From Ginkgo biloba (lineage: Eukaryota > Plantae > Ginkgophyta): DNA of 19,393 nucleotides. Positions 241 to 19,103 of this stretch are shown one piece after another. The stretch's first letter is position 1, and the number at the start of each line of letters is the position of its first letter. The DNA lies in the NCBI GenBank assembly GCA_024626585.2, contig JANKJI020000002.1, positions 166,514,320 through 166,533,712 on the forward strand, given 5' to 3'. Below the pieces are notes generated by a model. It ran no database searches. It had not been told where the DNA came from and saw nothing but the letters and a program-made list of their open reading frames with translations. The translations under genes and the position numbers were made by a program.

Positions 241-559
241 AATTATAGAACCTTGCTATCAATCTCTAATAAAAAACACAAATTTTGGGATTAAATAAGT
301 CATATTTGAAAATATGAAAGAAAGCAATCATAATAGATTACTTGCCACCTTGAGGGTGGAACCTCTTAAGTATAAAATTATGATAACAAAAATAAGCACG
401 CCTCTTATGATATTATAAGAAGATTATATATAATAATGATACCTTGCATGTATGACACATGTCCTCCATGTTTGAGGTTTATAAATATAGAAGACAGAGG
501 TAGGTGAGGATGAGAAAGAAGAATGAGATGCAAATAGGCTAAGGGTTGAGTTTCATAGG

Positions 560-2650
560 ATGCCCCTCATCTTTAAAAAATTATTGCCTAAAATCTCTAT
601 AAAATTTAGATATTGATGAAAGATATCTTCTCCTTCCCATATAGAATCTTCAAGTGGTATCTTCTTCCATTTGATGAGGTATTTTATGATAGCCCTATGA
701 CAAAGGTGTTTGCTATACTTTTCTAGTACTACCTCAGGTTCTAGCTAGAGTTTCCCTTCTTCATCTAACTCTGATAACTCTATTTGCATGATTACCTTCT
801 AAACCACTACCTTTTTTAGAATGGACACATGGAAGGTGTTGTGTATCTTTGAATAACTAGGTAGTTCCAAGGCATATGCCATTTCTCCCGCCCTTAGGAG
901 GATTTTGTAAGGCTAATAAAACATAGGAGCTAACTTATGTTTAGCCCACTTTGTTTGTTGATTCTTATTCATAGGGTTATAAAATTAAGTACACCCAATC
1001 ACATACTACAAATTAACTCTCACTTCTCTTATGATCAACTTATTTCTTCATTCTATTTTGAGCCATATGGAGGTTATCTTTTAGTATCTAGAGTACTTCT
1101 TGCATTCTCTGGACTTTATCTATAATTGTTTATACTTTTGTTTTATCTTATATATAGTTGTGGATTTTGAGGGGAGGGTATCCATAGAGTTACTTTAAGG
1201 GTGTTAGTTTAGTGGTTGTATGATAAGTGGTGTTGTACCACCACTTTTTCGGTATAGCCACTGAATCCATTTCCCTTATTTATTGGAAACATAAATCCTT
1301 AAGTAACCTTTCAAGCACTTATAACTCCACTCCCCCCTCTCTGAACTAAATGGATATTTCCTCTAAATTTATGATAAATTTCCCTAATGTCCTTAGCTAT
1401 TATGCTCTTATTATTACATTGACACCTCCCATGGGTATCACATACATTATGGTTATTGACATTATAATTTAGCATGGTTATTTTAATACTATCATATTTT
1501 CATCCATAGCTAATCATGTCACCATTAGAAATTGTGACCTAAAAATTATTCACTAGGTATGGGAAGCAATTCAATTATTATGCCAATTTCCTATTGCTGA
1601 AGTTGTGCATACTTCCTAAGTCAATCAAGATAATCACCCTTTTCTTATTGATATAACCTTCCACCTTGAGTGTCTAGGATGCGATAATGCCTACTAGGGC
1701 ATGCAATGATAGGGTGGGAAATTCTTCTTACTCATCACCATTCTCATTGGGAGGTAATTCCATTGTGTCCTCCTCTTCTTCCACACAATCCTCAATAGTG
1801 AAAAACTTTTTATTCGCACATTTGTGCCTCTAGACCATTTGTTGTTATATTTATAATATAGTCCATTGGCTCTTCTTTCATCCAACTCTTGGGTTATTAT
1901 TCTTTGAGGTGGTTGGAAGTCATTCCCTCTGGTTCCTTATTTAGAGTTTATGGGTTTCTTACTTTCCGTGAAGTTAGAGGGTCCACTATATATTCTTGAG
2001 ACTCAATTCTTTACTTCAATGTTGTTTCCATATGAATGGTTATGGATATGGATGAGGGTTTTAGGATCCTCAACTCATTTTTAATATATTTTCTTAGGCC
2101 CCCATTATATGGCTCTAATAGCTTATCCTCGCTATATCCTTTAACTCTAGTAGTAATTTTTTGGTGTTGAACCATATACTCTATGATAGAGCTTATCTAT
2201 CAAATTTTGGTCAGCTTGCTAAATTAGTATACTTTTGACATGTTATCATACTAGTTGATGAGGTCTTTGATAAAATTTTCCCACCTATACAATATTCCTA
2301 CCTACTTCTTTTCCATCCATTAGGACCATTATAAGGGATTATTCTCCATGCGAAGTGATGCCAAGGAAATATTCATATTTATGGCTACTTAGTGCTAGGT
2401 CTACATATATCTTATGCCAACTTTATGGACTTTCACCTTGGGGAAAAAACTCCCACATGTCCCTCTAGGCTCATGTACCTCTCTTGGGTTACTATTTGCC
2501 CATTTTCCTACTATTAACCCCTCTATTTTACTTAGTGTTTCTTCCATTATAACCATCTTAGCATCCATCTCCTCATGTATGGTGATTGTGGTATCATTTA
2601 CATCTTAGGACCAGTTTGGGTTTACTACTTTGTGAGCCATTCTGTGTGAC
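560..2650 (-). mobile_element. Decayed chromovirus-type Ty3/gypsy internal region (gag-protease-[RT/RNase H missing]-integrase C-half-chromodomain)
   Basis: Manual minus-strand translation gives: Gag zinc-knuckle remnant GLYYKYNNKWSRG (ORF 1694..1885); protease VIILIDLGSMHNF (~1605-1640) and MYVIPMGGVNVII (~1410-1448); integrase KCLKGYL (~1300-1320), WWYNTTYH (~1220-1243), TPLK*LYGY, KLAPMFY*PYKI (~901-936) and IHNTFHVSILKK (~812-846); chromodomain YLIKWKKIPLEDSIWE (634-681); and a purine tract aaagatgagggg (~563-575). Many stop codons. Confidence 0.92.
620..760 (-). pseudogene. Integrase C-terminal chromodomain remnant
   Basis: YLIKWKKIPLEDSIWE at 634-681 matches the chromovirus YLVKWxxxPxEDATWE consensus and lies downstream of the GPY/F module. 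Confidence 0.88.
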
Positions 2651-3079: not shown

Positions 3080-6000
3080 AGTTCCTGGGTTATCTCTGTA
3101 TAATTTTTTTCTTGTAATTATCATTTATTTTATGTTCAAGTAATTATTAGATTTTATATCTTTTTTAGAAATTTCTTATTTATTTAGATAGTTGTAATTC
3201 TATTTATGTTTGAATTCCTATAAGGATGAATCCTCTATGCACTTGAGGTGATTGGGTTTGGATTTTATTTCTTATTATTTCTCTAAGTTTGTGAACTTCT
3301 AGATTAATAATTTATGAGCCATGAATATAACTGATCATTTTGGCACCATTGCCAAGGAATGAAAAAATATCGATTATTGTGACCAAGTTCCTTTTAATAA
3401 AAGAACTATTCCATATTTTAGTATTAGTAGTTCTCTTCTTGAAAAATATTAGGTTTATGAGCCAACCATAGATTCTACATCTCTAACAAAAAGATAAGCT
3501 AAGTTGTTTTCTTGCAAGGACTCGCAATTTTAATTCGCATAACTCATGCAAGGTAATTATAATTTAATTTATTTTAGAGAAGGAAGTTTTCTTGTACAGT
3601 AGGTGTAATTAAATTTTAAAAACTTAATTTTATTAATAGGTTGATACAAATATATCTAATTTTCATTTGTATAGTAGGTGCAATTGATCAAAATAGATAA
3701 AGAGAATACTATGAAATTTTCACTTGCATAATAGGTATAGGTGACCTTGAAGACTCACCTATAATAAATTTGTAAGTGATAATACCTTGATTAATTAATA
3801 GATATATCAAACATAGGATAGGACCTATTTTGCATGATCATGGGTGTATAATTGAATGCCCAAATAGTCAAGAAGGCTCATGGTGTGAGAGGAATGTTCA
3901 TTATTGACATAGATATTTAATTAATTCATACAATGGTAGAAAATAACTTTACTCTATGGAAAATAATAGCGAAGAAGATGTAGAGAATAATGGACCCTAT
4001 ACAATCGTATTCTTGATCAAAATTATAGAGGATGATCAAAACAATTCTTATAAATAACATACCTCCAACAACACTTCCATAATTCTATAGTAAAAATCCA
4101 TGAGGATCCTAACTTATTCTTATTCAATTTTGATATGTTATGCCAAAGCTATGAATATCTTAAGGACACCCATAAATTAAATTTATTTCCACCTACATTA
4201 AAATGGGCTTTCTTAAGGTGGTTTATGAGTTTATAAGTTTGTTCTATTGGTACTTGAGATGAAATGAATATAATATTTTTGAAGAAGTACCAAGGGTAAT
4301 ACCAAGATAAGAAATTTAAAGAAGAACTAATAAAGTTGAGACAAGAGTAGGATGAGTCTCTTGAAGATTACATTGAGAGATTAGATTACCTTACTAAGAT
4401 ATAGGAGATGCCTAGGATATGGACATGGTGAATCCACCTGGAAGATGGTGATTCTTGCTAGATTACAATATGAGACCAAAATATGGCTAGAGTTATAGGC
4501 AAGGGTGGTTTTTTTTTCAATGCCTTTGAAGAAACTAAAGGAGGTATGCATTCAATATTCAATGGAATCAAAGAAATGGGAAAGGTGGCCTTTAATTGTT
4601 TCCTTGGTGACATAAAATTGAATGCGAGCAATAGAATCATCTGAGCTACTTAATAAGTATAAATTTATCAACCTATTAGGGGATTTAAAATAGGAAATTT
4701 TATCCCCAGTTGTTGAGAAAATCACCAATTTAGAGTTCAAATTATTTTGTAAAGAGGTCAAATATAGTTCAATCTTTGTGGTCTTTTGTCTAAGGTGCAG
4801 GAAGAAACACCTTAAGAACTAATGTGATTTTAAAATTTCCATAATTAAATAAGATGAAGATAAAGAATTTTTTCATAGGCTATGAGAAATAACTAATGAA
4901 GACAAGAATGCCTTTATATAATTGTGCTTAGTACAAATTCAAATATATGGAAGGGGATATAATTAATAGTTTAACGGGATATAAGGGATATATGATCCAT
5001 ACCAATTGACATATATTTATCCATCTAGTATATATTGATATACTAGACCTACAATTGATCATTTTTAATGTGATAGGAGTTATAAGCTAGGAACTATGTA
5101 ATATCCTCCTCCATACCCACCATGAAATTATCCCTCTTGTCTAGTTTCATACCCTCCTATGGTTCATCCCTATTATGGTGCTCCCATGGGGTATCGTAAT
5201 TACTATCATCCTCCCTCTCCATATGTGTTGAATCAATTTTATTAGTATAGACATATTCAACCACTATAAAATCCACCACCATAGCCTAATCCCCAATTTA
5301 TATTACCTACCCAAGTTTATCTTAACCTAGAAACTAATAAGAAATAATATCATGCCTATTCCATTGATTTAAATGGACAACCTTAATGGTATATACAGTG
5401 ATATAGTGAATAATAACCTTTCTCTAAGACATGATAATGTGAAAATATTTCTCTAAGATCAAGTAGAGTGGTGATAGGACTAGTACATCATGGAGATAAA
5501 AAAATAAGAAAAAGTAATTATATAGGAGATATAATAACCAATATTTATCCCTCTATTTGAAGATAAAAATTTTATTCCCTATGCTCACACATTGGAAATA
5601 TAAGAATCTAAAAAGGAGGAGGAAAAGTTTAACTTTGGTAATGACTTAAATAATGTATTTGCCAAGATTTTATTAGATAAGGTAGTCAAGGATACATTGA
5701 TTATGATAAGTAGGTGATGAACATATACTCTAAAACAAATAGGAAGAGGGACCTAGTGATGATAATTATAGTCAATTCCAATTCAAATGTATTTCTTGGG
5801 AAGGAGTAAGTGTTAAAGTATGGATACCTGTACACCCTTCTAGTTGGCATTTACATTGGGTAAACTTAAATTCTCAAATTTTTGGTGGAACTAATCATGG
5901 ATATTAATGTAATAACATAGAATACCATGAATATCATGTATTTATATGGATTAAGGCCCACTCATACTATTATCCATATGGAAGAACATTCTATGACTAA

Positions 6001-6897
6001 ACTAGATGAAATTATGGATAATGTGATGCTCTCCATTACTAATTAGGAGTATCTAAAAGACTTCATAATATTGTAGCCTAAGAAAGATCTTGAAGTATAT
6101 ATAATTATTCTTGGGATACTATGGTTAGTTATTATGGATGCAGTCATTACTTTTAGATTTGGTAAAATGGATATTACTCATGGAACTAAATAGAAATATC
6201 TTACACTATTTAAACCTACTAAATCTCTTATGTTATCAAACGCAAAAGAAAAATTAATCGAATAAGAATATGATGAGGTGAAAGACATAAATAGGTACAA
6301 ATTTCTCACCTCTAATTATAATGAGGATGAAGAAGAGTAGCTTTATTAGGATATGGCCTTAGAGGTGTTAGAGTAATTAGGGGAGAATGATAAGGATTCA
6401 TGGATCTGTAGATAATTATGGTTAGTAGATGATAGGGATAAAGATATTAATTACCTATTCAAAGGGAGTAAATTTTAGAAAGATCTAGATAGGGAAGATA
6501 AATTGAAATAGGTGGAGGACATTGAAATTGAGGAATGAAGATCATTATTCATTGGCAACTCTTATACAAATAAATTGAAAGGAAAAAATATAGAATTTTT
6601 ATGAAGAAAACAATATATATTCACATTGACACATAGATACTTGAAAAGTATAGTACCCAATGTATTCCAACACTATATTATCACCAACGATGATGCTGAA
6701 TGAGTGAGAAAACCATAACGTTGATTAAATCTTAACATGATGTATATTGTCAAGGAGGATTTGGAGAAAATCCTTATATTCAACATGATCTCTCTAATTT
6801 TAGATAGGTAGTAGGTATCACCATTAGTGGTAGTACCAAATAAGGGAGGTAAATGGTAGGTGTGTGTTTATTATAGATAATGAAACATTGCACTATC
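3080..6897 (+). mobile_element. Decayed non-chromovirus Ty3/gypsy (Athila/Tat-like): LTR end, PBS, gag, protease, N-terminal RT
   Basis: LTR end ...gatca (3337) and PBS tggcaccattgccaagga (3341-3358). Gag DPNLFLFNFDMLCQSYEY...KLNLFPPTLK...LRWFMSL (~4105-4233), ESLEDYIER, and Cys/His knuckle FCLRCRKKHLKN*C (~4784-4826). Pro-rich linker (~5100-5320). Protease IILGILWL (~6103-6126). RT SPLVVVPNKGGKW*VCVYYR (~6818-6877). The left boundary is uncertain. Confidence 0.88.
3341..3358 (+). promoter_or_regulatory. Primer-binding site, Athila-type (decayed tggcgccgttgccgggga)
   Basis: Differs from the consensus only by G>A changes and sits 3 nt after a CA LTR end. Confidence 0.75.
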
Positions 6898-7871: not shown

Positions 7872-9276
7872 GACATACATGGTCATGGATAAATTATATT
7901 ATCCCATACTTAATTTAATGTTATGACATTTCCCTCCATAATATATGTGCCCCCCCATTGGAAATCATTGCATGGAAAGTTTTTACTAGGAAAAAAAAAA
8001 AAATTAATTATTCAGCCAATATCTTATCAATTAAGCTATGTGTTTTTCTAAATTCAATCAACACCATGAACTTTTATTTTTGTATATATCCCTCTATTTT
8101 AAGAGTCTCAGGTGTGGTAATCCCATCCATTGCATGCATAGAAATTATGGTCAGTTATTCTTCTTGTTCCATTGGATAATTCCCTTAGGATTCATTATCA
8201 TTGGTTGCTTCCCCTTCTTCTTCATAGTTATCCTCTATAATAAATAGTTCCTTTTTAGAGAATGTATGACCCTTAGACCATTTATTATTACACTTGAAGA
8301 AAATTCCTTTAGCCTTTTTCTCTTCTAATTCTTGAGTTATGATTCTCCATGATTAGAGGGGTAGTGAGTCCCATGAATTTCCTCCTTCCATTATGATTGT
8401 AGTTATTATGGTACTTCTAGTGGATCTAATTCTTACCTCAATTTTCTTGGCCATTATGATAACAATGGATATATATTTAGGGTTTAAGAGCTAAAGCTCA
8501 TGTCAAATTTCTTCCTTTAATCCTATAATGTACAAATATAGAAATTTATCCTCACTTATCTCATCTACTCTAGTGTCCATATTCTGGTGTTGCAATTTTT
8601 ACTCTATTACAAATTCTATTTTCCTTGCCTTTAGTAGCTAATTAAAATTTTCTACTTCCCAAATATGATCATATTAGGTTGTGACCTCCTATAAAAAATT
8701 ATCCCATTTATATATCAATCCTACCCACCTTTTATTCATACACTCATACAATTAAAATGGTTTAGTTTTCATATCTAAGGAATCTAATGCAATCATGGTT
8801 TTTACCGGTACCTAATGGATATTAAACTACTAGTCCATTTGTATGATCTAGGTCCTTATGTCAATTCCATCAAATTTTTGTATTTCTAACTTGGAAGGCA
8901 GTTTCTTTTAATCCCCTTCAATTCTTAAGTCTCCTCATGACTATTTTCCTCCTTAGTTTATTCTATTTTTTGTATTATTATACTCTCCATCCTCCTTATG
9001 TACTTATTTAAGGATTATTCTACCCTTACCAATATTATATCCATCCCATCTCTTATTGTATTGACAAAATCATTTGGCTCCTTAGACTAGTGTGGATTGA
9101 TATTTAGTGCCAACTCGTTAATGAAATTGGATCTCAAATATATTTTAAAAGAATTTGGAAGTGTAAAGAAGAATATGACACACATTTAGTGCTATCAAGA
9201 GTGATATAGGATGTACAGGAAGAATTCTATAGTGTTGAGACTAGATCATCTCACTTGCCATAAATGGCTTCGCAAT
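7872..9276 (-). mobile_element. Decayed Ty3/gypsy gag-protease plus 5' leader, copy A (direct repeat of 17698-19103)
   Basis: Knuckle AKGIFFKCNNKWSKGH (~8265-8312) and protease MVLIEFRKTH (~8038-8067). Colinear with 17698-19103 at an offset of ~9826, roughly 90% identical by eye. Confidence 0.9.
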
Positions 9277-10323: not shown

Positions 10324-10423
10324 NNNNNNNNNNNNNNNNNNNNNNNNNNNNNNNNNNNNNNNNNNNNNNNNNNNNNNNNNNNNNNNNNNNNNNNNNNNNN
10401 NNNNNNNNNNNNNNNNNNNNNNN
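10324..10423. other. Assembly gap (exactly 100 N)
   Basis: Run of 100 N. Confidence 0.99.
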
Positions 10424-12218
10424 CTTCTTGGTTTATTTAATTTAACACCCATTATACGACTATGCAATTGAAATTGAACGTATGAATAATTGTAGCTACT
10501 GACATGATCGTTCGAATGGGTATGCAATTATTTGTGGAGCACACTAATGATACATAGTGATTTCAAACATTTTGCACTTTGCAATTGATCATGACTTCTA
10601 TCAGTTTCTAATTTGATGCATTTTTCTAGTGGAATGACCTGTTCAAACCCATTTCTTGTTATTACAGAATGAAATGATGAAAGATTCCCAACACTCAGGC
10701 CTATGTTATGAATATTTTGAAGGGTATACATATTTGAGTTATGTGCATTATCCAATACGACATGTTTGTTGCCAACTAAATTTTTTCTTATTTTTATCTT
10801 TCTAATTCCATCTTCTTTTTTAATAGTGAGTCACTTGCTATAAACAACTGGTGTATTTTTTTATGACTTATCCATTTTTGAGTTGGCCCATGTCAACCAA
10901 TCTTCGTTGTGAGTCACCCTTTCTCTCGTAAAATTATCTTTGGCCTTCAAATATGCATTCCATCTATTTTAGTTTGGTTTATCTATCAATAGACCATAAG
11001 AATCATTTAGATAATGATGTGGCATATTGGGTAAATATATCATGAAAGCATTTAGAGTCTTGGTAATGGAAAATTCCATGTGGCTATTCATAGTGTTAGT
11101 AGATTTGTCCATGTATTTCTTCCTATGTTTTTCTTATTTCATATGTCTAATAAGTGATAATTCAATATAAGGGATATAAGAAATCTCCCATGGTGAGTAG
11201 GTTCAGGTGTATTTTTAAGTATGATTTCAAGTATATCTCTATTGTATTCCATATAAATTATGGGTCCATTTAAAATATCTTAGTCATGTAGCATCCTTTC
11301 ACATCGTTCAACAAATAGAAATTCTATTTTGAGAGAGAGGTCTCTATGGATACAAATGGTAGGTTTTATGTATCTCTCCCTAACCACATAGAATGCCAAC
11401 AAATATTATATCATAGTAGATGGGAAGCATGTGCCCACCCTATTATTTATTCGTATGGGTTGATGGTTCCCTACTTTGATTTTAGTGGTTTCATTATTGT
11501 TCTTAGAATCATTGTTCATATTCTAGTTTTCTATTTTATCATATTTTTTATCATTATTGAGTAGCATAGTTTTAACATAATTTATTGATGGTGTATATTG
11601 TGTCTTAAGTAGAATCGTATAATATGGCCTATCTAAAAGGTGATCTAATGCCTCTCCATGTGTTAAAGTCATATATGTTTTCGCATTAGTCTTGACACCC
11701 ATATTTATTATGTTTAAGGGACCCTAGTTTAATTGACATATCAACTCTTATTTTTTGCAACTTGTGCTTGCGTTAACTATGTTTTCCTCTTATTTTTTCC
11801 TATCTTCAAATAACCAGTGATTATCTTCTGTTTCTTCCATTTGTGATTTTTTTTTATGAAGATCCTCTTTTCCTTCCTCATTTTTATATTCTCCTTCAAG
11901 TCAATAGTCATCAATTATTCTAAACTTATTATCATTTCCAATCTCATAGAAACAACCATAACATATATTGTAGTCCTCTTTCATTATAGACTTGTAATGA
12001 GGACCAATGATAGGGTTCATTCTACAACCATCACACTGTATATATTTATGAGTTTGATAAACTCTTTTTAACTCATTTTCATTGTCAATCTTATTAAAAC
12101 AACCATAACATAGGTCATAGCCCTCTGTCACTATATACTTGTATCAAGGGCCAATGATAGGGTTCATCCCATAATTATCCTATTGTATATATTCATGAAC
12201 TTACTCATAGGGATTCAT
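10424..12218 (-). pseudogene. Decayed ~600-codon ORF inside an LTR element: N-terminal tandem ZZ zinc fingers followed by an unrecognised region
   Basis: ATG at 12218. The frame can be followed by hand to the gap with ~15 stops and one frameshift near 11100-11200. It joins track ORFs 11901..12131, 10528..10755 and 10276..10527. About 45 stops would be expected by chance at this AT content (rough hand estimate). Confidence 0.7.
11905..12200 (-). other. Two tandem ZZ-type zinc-finger domains of the plant NBR1 type
   Basis: Copy 1: HEYIQ*DNYGMNPIIGP*YKYIVTEGYDLCYGCFNKIDNENELKRV. Copy 2: HKYIQCDGCRMNPIIGPHYKSIMKEDYNICYGCFYEIGNDNKFRIID. Both match the recalled NBR1 ZZ pattern H..I.CDGCG..PI.GPRFKS..KEDYDLC..C...MGNE..Y...D. 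A DNA-level repeat (ccaatgatagggttcat) is at ~12004 and ~12151, period 147 nt. Confidence 0.88.
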
Positions 12219-12251
12219 CCTACTGAAACTCTATTTGGGATCACAATCTAT

Positions 12252-12262
12252 CTCTGATACCA
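12252..12262 (-). promoter_or_regulatory. tRNA-iMet primer-binding site
   Basis: The minus strand reads tggtatcagag, 2 nt from the LTR end. Confidence 0.9.
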
Positions 12263-12264
12263 CT

Positions 12265-12649
12265 TATTGTGACCCAAATGGGGTATAGCTAGATAATATG
12301 AATAATTTAAAAAATTTATAGTAAAATTAATTTTAATTAGATAATATCAAACATTACATATTAAATGGGTGTGGGGAACCTGCAACCAAAATATCACTGA
12401 GCTGGGAGCACCTGCTACCCAGATGTAGAAAAGACCGTCTCAAAGAGAGAAGTAGAAATATTCAATATTTAATATGAGATGATTCTTACAAATGGTTGAG
12501 TTTCCTACATATAGATTACCAAAGCTTAATGGGTACCTTTGAGGAGGTTCCTCTTCATCTAGTGACCTTTCACTAATTATCTATTAAATAATAATGAATA
12601 GTAATATAAGTCATCATAGTACTAACTAATACTAGTTAGGGTCATAACA
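12265..12649 (-). mobile_element. 5' LTR (385 bp) of the ZZ-bearing element
   Basis: Terminal inverted repeats tattgtgaccc (12265-12275, decayed tgttgtgaccc) and gggtcataaca (12639-12649). Abuts the PBS. TATA-like ctatatgta on the minus strand at ~12506-12514. Confidence 0.85.
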
Positions 12650-12888
12650 ATATCTTTGAAGATGAAATCATTTCAGAAAAATATTTAATCAAGATAATAG
12701 AATGGAAATCAAAGGGAAGAGGACAAATGGAAAAATAATAATAATTCATGGAATCGAAGAATGAATTATGAGATAAAGTCTTATCAAAATTGACAATATG
12801 AAAATAAATGGAATCAAAGAAGAAGTTATTGTGAATCGACACTAATAAGGATCATGTGTGGATGGATGGATGATCAAGCATGGAGGAA

Positions 12889-12988
12889 NNNNNNNNNNNN
12901 NNNNNNNNNNNNNNNNNNNNNNNNNNNNNNNNNNNNNNNNNNNNNNNNNNNNNNNNNNNNNNNNNNNNNNNNNNNNNNNNNNNNNNNN
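12889..12988. other. Assembly gap (exactly 100 N)
   Basis: Run of 100 N. Confidence 0.99.
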
Positions 12989-13014: not shown

Positions 13015-14111
13015 ACATCCCATGGATTTCCTAGCAACTTAAGTAAAGGAACACCTTAATATTTTCTTAGCAAGATCCTTGCATCTTGCATGAAAAGGTG
13101 CTCCCTTACTCACTAAGGGAGGAAAAAGGTTCTTGGAACATAAAATAAGAAAGGCAATCCTTAGGCACTCTTTCATCCTAGATGAAAAGGCACTTCCTTA
13201 CTCACTAAGTGAGAAAAAAGGATCCAAGAACATAAAGGAAGGAAGGAAAGCCTCAAGTAATCGCTTGTCCTAGATGAAAAGGTGATCCCTTACTCACTAA
13301 GGGAGAAAAAATGATCTAGGAACATAAAGGAAGGAAGGAAGTCCTTAGATACTCTCCCATCCTAGATGAAAAGGCACTCCCCTACTCACTAAGGGATAAA
13401 AAAGGATCTAAGAACATAAAAGAACGAAGGAAAGAATTAGGCACTCACTCATCCTAGATGAAAAGGTGCTCCCTTAGTCACTAAGGGAGGAAAAAGGGTA
13501 TAGAAATACAAATGAAGGAAGGTGGACCCCAGGAACTCACTCATCTTGGATGAAGAGGCACTAACTTACTCACTACATGAGGAAAAAGGCACCCAAGAAG
13601 TAAAAAATTTAGGAATGTAATAAATTCCATGAACCTAAAAATATAATTTACAGTGGTGTAATAAGGAAGAAGTAATAATGATACTTTTACTAAGTGAGGA
13701 AGTCTCCCAAGAGGGAACACATTAAGTAATGGGATAAACTTTACAAACTTGAAAAGATATTACAATATGATATAATAAAGAAAGTCCATATCTTGGATGG
13801 AAAATCATATCCTTGATTAATAAGGGAATTAAAACATACATGAAGATTAAATTAGAGAAGAAAGAACCCAACTGCATATGTATCCTAGATGGAAAATCAT
13901 GTCCTTGATTGATAAAGGAAACAAAGTTTTTAGGAAGTTTAAATAAGAGAAGGCGAGACCCAACTATGTTCATGCCCTAGGTAATAAATCACATCCTTAT
14001 TCAATAAGGGAGGCAAAGGACTTAGGAAGTAAATATGGGTCTGAGGAGAAATACAACCTAGCTATGATAGTGTTCTTGGCTAACCTAGGAAAGAAAAAAA
14101 ATACCCAAGAA
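13015..14111. repeat. ~1.1 kb higher-order repeat, copy 1 (six ~92-bp monomers plus three diverged ones)
   Basis: Monomer catcctagatgaaaagg...tcccttactcactaaggga... at ~13082, 13175, 13267, 13358, 13450 and 13543. Diverged monomers at ~13790, 13882 and 13972. Confidence 0.93.
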
Positions 14112-14211
14112 NNNNNNNNNNNNNNNNNNNNNNNNNNNNNNNNNNNNNNNNNNNNNNNNNNNNNNNNNNNNNNNNNNNNNNNNNNNNNNNNNNNNNNNNN
14201 NNNNNNNNNNN
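14112..14211. other. Assembly gap (exactly 100 N)
   Basis: Run of 100 N between the two 1.1 kb copies. Confidence 0.99.
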
Positions 14212-15305
14212 ACATCCCATGGATTTCCTAGCAACTTAAGTAAAGGAACACCTTAATATTTTCTTAACAACATCCTTGCATCCTACATGAAAATTTTCTC
14301 CCTTACTCACTAAGGGAGGAAAAAGGATCTAGGAACATAAATTAAGGAAGGCAAGCTTTAGGTACTCTCTCATCCTAGATGAAAAGGCACTCCCTTACTC
14401 ATTAAATGAGAAAAAAGGATCCAAGAACATAAAGGAAGGAAGGAAAGCCTCAGTTAATCACTCATCCTAGATGAAAAGGAAATCCCTTACTCACTAAGGG
14501 AGGAAAAATGATCTAGGAACAGAAAGGAAGGAAGGAAGTGCCTAGATACTCTCTCATCCTAGATGAAAGGGAACTCCCTTACTCACTAAGGGAGGAAAAA
14601 GGATCGAAGAAAATGAAGGAAGGAAGGAAAGCATTAGGAACTCACTCATCCTAGATGAAAAGGTTCTCCCTTACTCACTAAGGGAGGAAAAGGGATATAT
14701 AAATATAAATGAATGAAGGTGGAACCCAGGCCCTCACTCATCTTGGATGAAAAGGAACTAACTTACTCACTATATGAAAAAAAAGGCACCTAGTAAGTAA
14801 AAAAATTAGGAATGTAATAAAGTCTATGAACCTAAAAATATAATTTATGGTGGTGTAATAAGGAAGAAGTAATAATGATACTTTTACTGAGTGAGGAAGT
14901 TGCCCAAGAGGGAACACATTAAGTAATGGGATAAACTTTACAAACTTGAAAATATATTACAATATGATATAATTATGAAAGTCCATATCTTGGATGGAAA
15001 ATCATATCCTTGATCAATAATGGAATCAAAGCATACAAGAATATTAAATTAGAGAAAGGACACAACTTCATATGTATCCTAGATGGAAAATCTTGTCCTT
15101 GATTAATAAAGGAAGTAAATTTCTTAGGAAGTTTAAATTAGAGAAGGCAAGACCCAACTATGCTCATGCACATGGTAATAAAGAACATCCTTATTCAATA
15201 AGGGAAGCAAAGGACTTAGGAAGTAAATATGGGTCCGAGGAGAAATACAACCTAGCTATGATAGTGTTATTGGCTAACCTAGGAAAGAAAAAAAATACCT
15301 AGGAA
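14212..15305. repeat. ~1.1 kb higher-order repeat, copy 2
   Basis: Starts acatcccatggatttcctagcaacttaag, as at 13015, and is colinear to ...aacctaggaaagaaaaaaaatacc. Monomers at ~14279, 14371, 14464, 14556, 14647 and 14739. About 90% identical to copy 1 by eye. Confidence 0.93.
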
Positions 15306-16424: not shown

Positions 16425-19103
16425 TATCATATTCCACTATGAATATTTTGGTAAAGTTTAGAGTTTCCAAGACTTGGGTAGGGATCATAGCCAATTTTTA
16501 TTTTTCAAATGCTTAGATTGCCTCTTCATTCCAACTAAATGTATCCTTCTTTAATAGCTCAATTAAGGGGGAAGTATTATAACTATAACCTTTTAAATTA
16601 TTTCCTATAGTATCTAGTTAGTCCCAAGAATCCTCTTATGCCCTTAATATTTTTGGGGGTAGGCCAAGCTAGAATGGCCTAAATATTTTGTAGGTCCAAC
16701 TTCACCCATTCTCCGCATATAATATTCCCCAGGTATTCTCCTTACTTCTTACCAAAGTCACACTTATACCTATTCACATAAATCCAATTATCTTCCATAA
16801 TCTAGAGAACCTTTTTTACATGGGTAATGTGGTCCTCCCAATTTTAATTATAAATTAGTATATTATCAAAAAATACAAGTATAAAATTCCTCAAATCTGG
16901 TTTGCAAATATTTTCTACAAGGCATTGGAAGGTGGATGGGGAATTAGTTAAGCCAAATGGACATAACTAAGAACTCATAGTAACCTTCATGTCTTTATAT
17001 TTAATTTTCTCAATATCTTCCACCCTTATTTGAATTCAATGATACCTTGATCATAGTTCTATCCAAATGAAGCAAATTACTCAATTTATTTCATTTAATA
17101 ACTTATCTATCACGAAAATGGAGAATTTATCCTTGAATTTTATCTTGTTAAATTCTTAATAATAAGAACACATTGAAAAGGACCTATTTTTTTTCCTTAC
17201 TAGAATTACTAGGGAAAAGAAGGACCTCTTTCTTTGTTTAATAGAATCTACTTCCAATAGATCTTGTACCAACATTTCTATCTTACTCTTCTATTATAGG
17301 GACATAATTAAGGCCTATAATTTGGAATATTACTTCCAAACATTAATTGAATATCATGGTCATTCTCCCTTTTAAGGGGAAGTGCTTTGGGTAAATTCTT
17401 AAATACCCTATTGTGTTGAATAAGGAATTCCTATAACTTTGGTGCAACAACCACTTATTCTTCATATCCTTCAATGGCATAACATCTCACAAAGAGGCCA
17501 CTGGCACATTTATTTATCATTTTTTCTATTTTGTAGGAGCTAATCACTTGAGTAGGAGGTGACATAAACCCCTATAACTAATACTTCCTTTCATCTATTT
17601 TAAACCTAATAAAGAGATCCTTTAGGTTCATTCAAAATGTCCCTAGCATTTTAAGCCATTATACACTAAGTACCACATCAACCCTTCCAATAGGAATGAC
17701 ATACATGGTCATGGATAAATTATATTATCTAATATGTAATTTAATGTTATGATATTTCCATCCATAAGATATGTACCCCCAATTGGCGATCATTGCATGG
17801 AAAGTTCTTACCAGGAAATGAAAATAATTTAATTATTCAACCAATCTCTTATCAATTAATCTACGTGTTCTTCTAAAGTCAATCAACACCATGATATTTT
17901 ATTTTTGTATATATCCCTCTATTTTAAGAGTCTATGGTGTGGTAATCCCATCCATTTCATGCATAGAAATTATGGCCAGTTATTCTTCTTCTTCCATTGG
18001 ATGATTCCCGTAGGATTCATTATCATTAGTTGCTTCCCCTTCTTCTTCCTAGTTATCCTCTATAATAAATAGTTCTTTTTTAGACAATGTATGACCCTTA
18101 TAACATTTATTATTACACTTAAAGCAAAGTCCTTTAGCATTTTTCTCTTCTAATTCTTGAGTTATGATTCTTCATGCTTAGATGGCTAGTGAGTCCCATG
18201 AATTTCCTCCTTCCATTATGATTGTAGTTACTATGGTACTTATAGTGGATCTATTTTTTACCTCAATTTTCTTGGCCATTATGATAACAATGGATATATC
18301 TTTAGGGTTTAAGAGTTAAAGATCATGTCAAATTTCTTCCTTTAATCCTATAATGTACAAATATAGAAATTTATCCTCACTTAGCTCATCTACTCTAGTG
18401 TCCATCTTCTGGTGTTGCAATTTATAGTCTATTACAAAGTCTATTTTCCTCACCTTTAGTAGCTAACTAAAATTTTCTACTTCCCAAATATTATCATATT
18501 AGGTTGTGGCCTCCTATAAAAACTTATCCCATTTATATATCAATTTCCTACCCACCTTTTATTCATCCACTCATACAATTGAAATGGTTTAGTTTTCATA
18601 TGTAAGGAATCTAATCCAATCATTTTTTTTACCAGTACCTAATGGATACTAAACTACTAGTCCATTTGGATGATCTAGGTCCTTATGTTGATTCCATCAA
18701 ACTTCTATATTTCTAACTTGGAAGGTATTTTCTTTTAACCCCCTTCAATTATTAATTCTCCTCATGACTACTTTCCTCCTTAGTTTATTCTATTTTTTTT
18801 ATTATTATACTCTCCATCCTCCTCATGTACTCCTTTAAGGATTATTCTACCCTTCCCAATCTTATATCCATCTCATATCTTATTGTATTGACAAAATCAT
18901 TTAGCTCCTTAGACTAGTTTGGATTGATATTTAGTGCCAACCCATTAATGAAATTAGATCTCAAATCTATTTTTAAAGAATTTGGAAATGTAAAGAACAA
19001 TATCACACACATTTAGTGCTATGAAGAGTGAGATGGGATGCACAGGAAGAATTCTATAGTGTTGATACTATATCATCTCACTTGCCACAAATGGCTTGGC
19101 AAT
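16425..19103 (-). mobile_element. Decayed Ty3/gypsy gag-protease-RT, copy B
   Basis: Knuckle AKGLCFKCNNKCYKGH (~18090-18138), protease MVLIDFRRTR (~17862-17891) and MYVIPIGRVDVVLSV*WL. RT motifs GYYEFLVM (~16962-16985), [17 protein letters not shown] (~16850-16886; decayed FFDD), and GFLGLTRYY.KL (~16598-16633). Confidence 0.93.

Follow-up and report, generated by a model that had tools for sequence, protein, structure and literature searches.

Capture of host gene fragments by plant LTR retrotransposons, including capture from spliced mRNAs, is well documented, and co-packaging of an mRNA followed by template switching is the route proposed for maize Bs1 and for the "retroduplicated" genes of plant LTR elements (PMC13317346; PMC5664825). 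In these systems the body of an LTR-type element contains a host coding fragment that lacks its intron, and the captures are usually pseudogenes (PMC13317346; PMC5664825). A link between retroelements and the NBR1 family of autophagy receptors has been described in yeast, where the NBR1 homologue Atg19 transports Ty1 particles; receptors of this family deliver retroelement particles to the vacuole (PMC9582228). Plant NBR1/Joka2 has the architecture PB1-ZZ-FW-UBA. Here, we describe a locus of Ginkgo biloba in which two NBR1-type ZZ units stand in tandem shortly behind a tRNA-iMet primer binding site (PBS) and run in phase into a long stop-depleted reading frame. The window analyzed is a stretch of 19,393 nucleotides, and the locus occupies a 2.5-kb contig within it (10424-12888) that is flanked by N gaps on both sides. 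With moderate confidence, we read the locus as a passive, one-off capture, by an LTR retrotransposon, of part of a spliced host NBR1 mRNA.

The two ZZ units lie on the minus strand, as do the other features of the element, and form an in-frame tandem of 147 nt (49 codons) per unit:

12051 to 12197, minus strand: ZZ copy 1, broken by in-frame stops at 12182-12180 and 12146-12144
11904 to 12050, minus strand: ZZ copy 2, an open unit of 49 codons followed by a TGA at 11903-11901

A repeat search aligned the copies with 77% identity over 142 nt, and 37 differences over the full 147 nt correspond to 75% nucleotide identity. When open pieces were searched separately, an 80-aa piece matched Pfam ZZ (PF00569) in two stretches with E=6.8e-13 and 48.6 bits, and copy 2 alone gave E=1.1e-9 and 38.4 bits, the gathering cut-off being 21.4. 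The window units are ZZ domains, and the two 49-codon repeats proposed in an initial annotation of this DNA, made from the sequence alone, are thus confirmed. Copy 2 reads ...GPHYKSIMKEDYNIC..., exactly as given there, and in the alignment with plant NBR1 ZZ domains it keeps all four zinc cysteines (C6, C9, C30 and C33). Copy 1 has lost the first CxxC pair, one cysteine having changed to a stop and the other to tyrosine, and keeps the CYGC pair. The DYD motif, with its two acidic residues, has lost one of them in each copy; in p62 these residues matter for ligand binding. An AF2 model of ZZ copy 2, built on a 14-row alignment and leaning on its NBR1 rows, reached a pLDDT of 84. The named top matches of the model in the PDB were the ZZ domains of p62, HERC2 and p300, with TM-scores of up to 0.79 (HERC2 ZZ). 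A candidate third, partial ZZ unit upstream ("MNPYE" compared with "MNPII") was rejected because it does not keep to the 147-nt period.

The ZZ units are of the plant-NBR1 type, as had been proposed from the sequence. The best match of copy 2 is the Ginkgo protein Gb_08610 (64% identity), followed in the per-domain comparison by a Logan transcript with PB1-ZZ-FW-UBA architecture (60%) and Dioscorea NBR1 (55%); copy 1 matched plant NBR1 proteins with 43-57% identity in tblastn. These best per-domain matches either carry PB1/ZZ/N_BRCA1_IG/UBA_NBR1_C or bear the NBR1 name. The Ginkgo protein scored 74 bits (blastp), whereas the best non-NBR1 ZZ in the PDB scored 25.7 bits (phmmer). The plant-NBR1 signature GPxYKS..KEDY is present and replaces the second cysteine pair. 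Copy 2 has kept all 13 residues that are invariant across the aligned plant NBR1 ZZ domains, one of them a serine where canonical ZZ domains (HERC2, KCMF1) have cysteine. The window copies have the ZZ type CDGC...GPxYKS..KEDYxxC..CF..GN in common with plant NBR1/Joka2, but they are doubled and broken and come without PB1, FW, UBA or intron; they are a fragment rather than a receptor. Searching the whole window by tblastn with 12 plant NBR1 and PB1-ZZ proteins returned no NBR1 part beyond the two ZZ units, with PB1, FW (N_BRCA1_IG) and UBA all absent.

The tandem could also have been inherited as such. The initial annotation had stated that plant NBR1 has a single ZZ, which is correct for the three NBR1 proteins scanned, but plant proteins with two tandem NBR1-like ZZ domains behind a PB1 do exist in Wolffia australiana (XP_078439554.1) and Riccia fluitans (KAL2632659.1). 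The locus would then be what is left of a processed pseudogene derived from a host PB1-ZZ-ZZ gene, with both ZZ units taken over from the parent mRNA and the retroelement features unrelated to them. A single alignment of the Wolffia protein spans the two window units, in agreement with such an origin. However, the window holds no PB1 by tblastn, and the units are both closest to the Ginkgo NBR1-type ZZ (26/47 and 30/47 residues), which is matched by one copy or the other at 37/47, and less similar to the PB1-ZZ-ZZ proteins. The spacing differs as well: the window has a period of exactly 147 nt with a 2-residue linker, whereas the ZZ domains start 55 residues apart in Wolffia and 93 in Riccia. 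The Riccia units are only about 43% identical to each other in protein and therefore stem from an old duplication, compared with 75% nucleotide identity for the window units. We consider descent from a PB1-ZZ-ZZ gene very unlikely.

The intron is informative about how the fragment arose. In 6/6 host ZZ domains examined, from one liverwort (Riccia, two domains), one fern (Adiantum), one magnoliid (Aristolochia) and two monocots (Dioscorea and Urochloa), an intron lies between GPRYKSxx and K-DYDLC. Both window copies are contiguous at this conserved position, in line with the intron-free repeats noted at first, and the fragment therefore came from a spliced mRNA. The ZZ intron, being conserved, offers a convenient sign of RNA-mediated origin.

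Besides the ZZ units, the contig and its edges show these features:

12889 to 12988: second N gap, bounding the contig on this side
12264 to 12649, minus strand: putative 5' LTR (TGTTATGACCC...GGGTCACAATAA), with a putative 5' boundary and length
12252 to 12262, minus strand: PBS TGGTATCAGAG, complementary to the 3' end of tRNA-iMet, an exact 11-mer
12235 to 12278, minus strand: hairpin whose loop contains the PBS, formed by arms at 12278-12266 (LTR end) and 12247-12235 (leader)
12201 to 12218, minus strand: ATG, then MNPYE and a stop, in the ZZ frame by translation
11863 to 11879, minus strand: run of 17 purines in a purine-rich stretch, just past ZZ copy 2, as read from the sequence
10324 to 10423, no strand: scaffold gap, a run of 100 N that removes the 3' part of the element

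The 11-mer of the PBS, TGGTATCAGAG, occurs once in the window, where 0.01 occurrences are expected by chance, and it agrees at 11/12 bases with the tRNA-Met PBS given for copia elements of Jatropha (PMC3852365). It anchors the 3' end of the putative LTR. The LTR itself, annotated at first as 385 bp long with inverted termini, was not confirmed: no second copy of 12265-12649 was found across the whole window, in a contig that is cut by the N gap at 10423, and the inverted repeat of its termini (12264-12278 and 12636-12650, 12/15 complementary) is at chance level, with 1.7 such matches expected in the window. No other copy of any part of the contig was found within the window either. The inverted repeat that surrounds the PBS is 13 nt long and 85% complementary, and the RNA of 12290-12225 folds with -16.4 kcal/mol (z=-2.2), a value equaled by 5/200 shuffles. 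The ATG at 12218 does lie 33 nt past the PBS as first described, but it opens only the short reading MNPYE before a stop. The 17-purine run resembles a polypurine tract, of which about 0.1 would be expected in the region as estimated from base composition; no LTR homology was found in the window downstream of the run (11879-11863). Scanning the window for Rfam families and tRNA genes gave no match.

A primer site for tRNA-Met is not exclusive to LTR retrotransposons. Badnaviruses and rice tungro bacilliform virus use a tRNA-Met primer site as well, and papers on these viruses contain the motif TGGTATCAGAGC; the leader could be that of an endogenous pararetrovirus (Caulimoviridae). This is highly improbable, as Pfam detected no movement protein, coat protein or RT-RNase H in any of the open pieces, and the terminus of the inverted repeat abuts the PBS as it does in LTR elements. 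Ty1/copia elements with a tRNA-iMet PBS resemble the locus in having the PBS near the LTR end, an A-rich sense strand (41.5% A in the window element) and a long ORF soon after the PBS. The window element differs from them in having no recognizable GAG, PROT, INT or RT domain and one LTR at most.

The ZZ frame runs without phase change into a stop-depleted ORF of about 450 codons, which continues after a frame shift:

11142 to 11900, minus strand: stop-depleted frame in the phase of the ZZ units, 6 stops in 253 codons, the other two having 22 and 33
10531 to 11133, minus strand: stop-depleted continuation past a shift of frame near 11140; over 11140-10531 it has 4 stops in 203 codons, compared with 19 and 19

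The best 200-codon stretch has 3 stops, the lowest density in the whole window, and is reached by 0.5% of shuffles; the frame-shifted continuation includes an open piece of 100 codons (10830-10531). By chance, both ZZ units and the ORF would share one frame in about 1 of 9 cases. The initial annotation had taken this region for a long decayed ORF. Its stop depletion in two linked frames agrees with that view, but no gag or pol domain was recognized: among 20 open pieces (25-100 aa) from both strands of the contig, Pfam found ZZ only, and no gag, protease, integrase or RT. It follows that the ORF could be something else. The downstream frame has no true Pfam or PDB match. A match of designer PPR10 in the PDB (E=1.2e-8) was an artefact, in which a single 19-residue match of 3.4 bits had been counted against 8 identical repeats. 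The ORF may retain, in copia order, candidate relics of Gag, protease and pre-integrase motifs, namely Gag "LLxSLP", a zinc knuckle, protease "LDSGA" near 10770 and "WHxRLGH" near 10540. A copia polyprotein for comparison was sought in two 24-kb plant loci, which held none. The homologous-protein search with the 100-aa downstream piece, over a length range that excluded full-length NBR1 and polyproteins, came back blank.

Together with the PBS, the leader hairpin and the A-rich sense strand, these features make the locus probably the 5' portion of an LTR retrotransposon that is old and dead and to which the decayed ORF of at least 450 codons would belong. A piece of NBR1 mRNA, essentially the ZZ domain alone, would sit at its coding start. 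We infer that the host mRNA was packaged together with the element RNA and copied in by template switching of the reverse transcriptase, and that the captured piece later underwent tandem duplication, the unit being 147 bp. After the death of the element, the ZZ units and the ORF would have accumulated neutral changes at comparable levels, about 0.13-0.15 substitutions per site. In this reconstruction the LTR would be a true LTR, the ORF would be gag-pol, and the fragment would have been inside the element when it was mobile. Unlike Bs1 and the retroduplicated genes, the window capture spans about 150 nt and one domain, directly behind the PBS, phased with the ORF and tandem-duplicated; its presence in a mobile unit is deduced from a locus with neither both LTRs nor further copies. 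If passive capture is all that took place, the locus is one more example of host gene fragments in plant LTR retrotransposons.

Several observations count against capture: a single copy was seen, with no second LTR, target-site duplication (TSD) or convincing polypurine tract, and the inverted termini are at chance level. Since the draft contig is only 2.5 kb long between gaps and one copy is at hand, a later deletion could have brought an LTR-PBS stub up against a retro-copied fragment to which it is unrelated. A retro-copied NBR1 fragment and the 5' stub of an LTR element would then have come together by nested insertion and deletion, and the ZZ would never have traveled in the element. Such juxtaposition would be in keeping with a window that is a mosaic of decayed elements, including a chromodomain relic (556-744), repeats of 91-92% identity that lie 9.8 kb apart and a 92-bp satellite, and with a contig that ends in the N gap at 10423 with neither 3' LTR nor TSD seen. 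The distance from the leader hairpin to the ZZ homology, only about 35 nt, also speaks for it. On the other hand, ZZ and ORF share one phase and a similar degree of decay, as fits one unit. Processed pseudogenes of the LINE type usually retain the 3' end of the mRNA, whereas the window holds only an internal 150-nt piece of NBR1. Juxtaposition is possible, though in our judgment rather unlikely.

The mosaic of the window also includes three pieces that read like relics of gypsy gag, with no Pfam match. For one of them, an 80-aa piece at 1697-1936, the homologous-protein search, whose length range excluded polyproteins, was blank.

Searches for relatives of the ZZ element covered several collections and turned up no second copy of the junction. 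The homologous-protein search with the 80-aa ZZ piece was blank over a length range that excluded full-length NBR1 and polyproteins, and the exact products of the 76-aa and 39-aa ORFs are not on record. The ZZ peptide against metagenome and viral contigs, and the PBS-to-ZZ DNA pattern against metagenome contigs, returned nothing from collections unlikely to hold plant DNA. NBR1-like ZZ and retroelement domains occurred together in 0/147 proteins scanned among the 150 best matches from 1.84 billion library representatives. BFVD gave no ZZ match in retro- or pararetroviruses, the named ZZ matches there being giant-virus proteins, and a literature search found no paper tying ZZ to LTR elements.

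The initial annotation had gone further and proposed that a retrotransposon family recruited the ZZ for a function. In such a lineage the Gag would carry an N-terminal ZZ-ZZ, either as a decoy against NBR1-mediated autophagy of the particles or to read protein N-termini or the histone H3 tail, the window element being a dead member. Both ZZ units and the downstream ORF share one frame, so that a coding role in the past keeps some plausibility, and copy 2 is still open with the four cysteines of the retained zinc site. In favor of the idea, NBR1-family receptors do carry retroelement particles to the vacuole (PMC9582228). If many copies with an intact ZZ-Gag frame existed, no earlier retroelement would be known to have acquired a domain of the autophagy receptors by which viral and retroelement particles are cleared, and mimicry might then serve as counter-defence; none of the present findings points to it. 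The loss of one DYD aspartate in each copy and the outcome of the library, BFVD and literature searches speak against recruitment. We regard functional recruitment as quite improbable, and it is more doubtful still that an old, probably gymnosperm, LTR lineage had a Gag whose NBR1-derived ZZ shielded its particles from autophagy or tethered them to an N-terminus or histone tail. Nothing shows any use of the captured ZZ by the element, and nothing indicates that ZZ-ZZ was a working protein.

The pattern of change between the ZZ copies is neutral. Copies 1 and 2 differ at 14, 11 and 12 sites in first, second and third codon positions, and only 4 of the 31 changed codons are synonymous. Changes polarized with outgroups number 6/7/6 and 5/2/3 by codon position; for these position-by-position counts only, the two exon parts of each host ZZ were joined. 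The even distribution over codon positions therefore indicates neutral decay with no coding constraint, and this absence of bias, together with the age of the duplication, tells against a recruited function as first proposed. This copy is dead, as also stated at the outset; copy 1 has two stops, and stops and a frame shift interrupt the ORF. Decay estimated from the ORF stops amounts to about 0.13 substitutions per site, compared with 0.15 for each ZZ copy; the ZZ duplication and the death of the ORF seem to be of about the same age, the duplication being no older.

Capture from a spliced NBR1 mRNA is a well-supported origin for the two ZZ units. On the minus strand, the ATG at 12218 begins a short reading, MNPYE, that ends in a stop; two 49-codon units follow in the same frame, and a repeat search of the window recovered them as a pair with 147-nt spacing and 77% identity:

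12197-12051, minus strand: ZZ copy 1, with stops at 12182-12180 and 12146-12144 and the first CxxC pair gone
12050-11904, minus strand: ZZ copy 2, open and terminated by TGA

With broken frames searched as separate open pieces, the open 80-residue piece 12143-11904 matched Pfam ZZ in two stretches (E=6.8e-13), and copy 2 alone gave 1.1e-9. The AlphaFold2 model of copy 2 (13 NBR1-type rows in the alignment) had a pLDDT of 84, and its best PDB matches were the ZZ domains of p62, HERC2, p300, BIG and PRT1. The in-frame ZZ repeats described in the initial annotation are thus confirmed.

The strongest positive support for capture is the absence of an intron. At the genomic loci of NBR1 and PB1-ZZ genes, an intron interrupts the host ZZ domain at a single site between GPRYKSxx and K-DYDLC. 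It is present in Dioscorea, Urochloa, Riccia (in both ZZ domains), Adiantum and Aristolochia, and the lineages that conserve it bracket all vascular plants. As the initial annotation had noted, both copies in the window are uninterrupted, here across that very site (GPHYKSIMKEDYNIC). Because the host intron is conserved and is missing from both copies, the fragment is concluded to derive from spliced mRNA.

The plant-NBR1 type assigned to the peptide also held. HMMER run against 1.84 billion representatives returned 669 matches, which were then ranked per domain. The top match was Ginkgo Gb_08610 (protein P0041; 64% identity); other top matches were a Logan transcript with PB1-ZZ-FW-UBA (60%) and a second Ginkgo PB1-ZZ model, and NBR1 of Urochloa, Dioscorea, Asparagus, Aristolochia and Adiantum was also among the best. 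Copy 2 keeps all 13 alignment-invariant residues (H1, C6, C9, P13, I14, G16, P17, K20, S21, C30, C33, G38, N39), including the invariant Ser where the ZZ domains of HERC2 and KCMF1 have Cys. The Ginkgo protein scored 74 bits (blastp), compared with at most about 25 bits for non-NBR1 PDB ZZ domains (phmmer). Of 47 positions, 37 show the residue of the Ginkgo protein in copy 1, copy 2 or both, which fits two copies of a gymnosperm-like NBR1 ZZ decaying independently. By nucleotides, the NBR1 transcript L001 (Logan SRR16347603) was nearest to copy 2, with 74% identity over 141 nt, higher than that of angiosperm NBR1 genes; the species it comes from may be a near relative of the window's source. 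When 12 NBR1 and PB1-ZZ proteins were compared to the window by tblastn, NBR1 homology was found only at the ZZ units.

The P0041 model joins PB1-ZZ to MIF4G and MA3 (eIF4G-like) and has neither FW nor UBA; annotation has probably fused two adjacent genes. Short proteins from Wolffia australiana (P0005) and Riccia fluitans (P0012, locus L003) carry PB1 and two NBR1-type ZZ domains without FW or UBA, and may represent a minor NBR1-family branch that is so far undescribed.

The ZZ fragment is likely located inside an LTR-type element. The tRNA-Met PBS proposed for it, TGGTATCAGAG at 12262-12252 (minus strand), is an exact 11-mer, unique in the window and with 0.01 expected by chance. It lies in the loop of a hairpin at 12235-12278 (minus strand), whose arms, the 13 nt before the PBS and the following leader, pair over about 13-14 bp (z=-2.2). 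The 15 nt 3' of the PBS presumably also pair in part with the T-arm of plant tRNA-iMet. The motif is that printed as the tRNA-Met PBS of copia elements (PMC3852365). The proposed 385-bp LTR with inverted termini is not confirmed, and its 5' boundary and length are putative: the termini of 12649-12264 match at 12/15, but their quality is at chance level, with 1.7 such matches expected in the window, and a second copy is absent within the window. ZZ units, PBS and downstream ORF all lie within the single contig 10424-12888, and the putative element runs into the gap at 10423, where its 3' portion is missing.

The long decayed ORF is supported by stop counts. At 11900-11142 (minus strand), 253 codons of the ZZ frame contain 6 stops, versus 22 and 33 for its two alternatives. 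The frame shifts near 11140, and from there to 10531 the new one contains 4 stops over 203 codons, versus 19 and 19. These densities are the lowest in the window on both strands, and the best value was reached by 0.5% of contig shuffles (the sense strand of the contig is 41.5% A). Such depletion indicates that some 450 codons, in phase after the ZZ units, were once coding. Protein, PDB and Pfam searches with its open pieces gave no homologue. We take a colinear resemblance to copia Gag, zinc-knuckle, protease and pre-integrase motifs as a lead only. A match of 11526-11723 (minus strand) to a designer PPR (PDB 6een_C, phmmer E=1.2e-8) was rejected as a scoring artefact, since no single stretch was significant and one 19-residue match was scored anew against each of 8 identical repeats, a caution for repeat proteins generally.

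A functional role of the ZZ pair for the element, proposed as a decoy against autophagy or as a reader of N-termini or the H3 tail, is unsupported. The copies differ at 37 of 147 sites (codon positions 14/11/12); 31 codons are altered, just 4 of them synonymously. With three NBR1 outgroups to polarise the changes, 19 are derived in copy 1 (6/7/6) and 10 in copy 2 (5/2/3). Real NBR1 genes differ chiefly at third positions, e.g. 9/9/30, host exon parts being joined solely for these position-wise counts. Nothing points to a phase of constrained ZZ-ZZ evolution. Decay estimated from the ORF stops (about 0.13 substitutions per site, with a wide interval) is close to that of the ZZ (about 0.15 per copy), suggesting that the duplication and the death of this copy are of similar age. 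According to a review, yeast Atg19, an NBR1 homologue, takes Ty1 particles to the vacuole (PMC9582228), so that a decoy against autophagy of particles would be conceivable by analogy.

Plant LTR retrotransposons capture host gene fragments and spliced mRNAs, as in Bs1 and by template switching, and thousands of genes lie inside them (PMC13317346; PMC5664825). The present finding is a fresh instance of this known type of event. The literature search returned no paper tying ZZ or NBR1 domains to LTR elements. Among the 147 library matches scanned, out of the 150 best, partner domains were PB1, N_BRCA1_IG, UBA and a few unrelated ones, with no retroelement domain beside ZZ. In BFVD, the named ZZ matches were giant-virus proteins, and the matches included no protein of a retro- or pararetrovirus. 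No second copy was found in the protein, metagenome, viral and exact-product collections searched, none of which consists of plant genomes. The significance would be much greater only if a family with an intact ZZ-gag frame were present in the source genome.

The window has about 30% G+C and, with 100-N gaps about every 2.4 kb, is a draft scaffold; its remainder is a transposon graveyard:

556-744, minus strand: chromodomain-like relic (Pfam Chromo E=8.6e-4, under the gathering score)
385-984, minus strand: stop-depleted frame around this relic
4339-4938, minus strand: stop-depleted frame, 4 stops per 200 codons
5716-6315, minus strand: stop-depleted frame, 5 stops per 200 codons

The relic suggests a decayed chromovirus integrase tail. 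The frames at 4339-4938 and 5716-6315 are probably other decayed transposon ORFs; the open piece 4555-4818 had no Pfam match. Two 1.4-kb segments, 7872-9276 (beginning exactly at a contig edge) and 17698-19103, share 92% identity at a distance of 9826 bp. Each bears what reads like a minus-strand gypsy-gag piece (one at 8188-8352), as does 1697-1936, and Pfam gave no match for the three pieces. The segments resemble two members of a single gypsy-like family, not the LTR pair of one element. Within 13015-15305, a 92-bp satellite forms two arrays of about 5.4 copies each (78-80% matches), in a 1.1-kb block duplicated at 91% identity (13015-14111 and 14212-15305); an N gap lies between the blocks, so assembly could account for some of the duplication. 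Scans for tRNA genes and Rfam families found none in the window. Positions 1-250 are a long microsatellite of the (CATA)n/(TA)n type, with many overlapping direct and inverted repeats.
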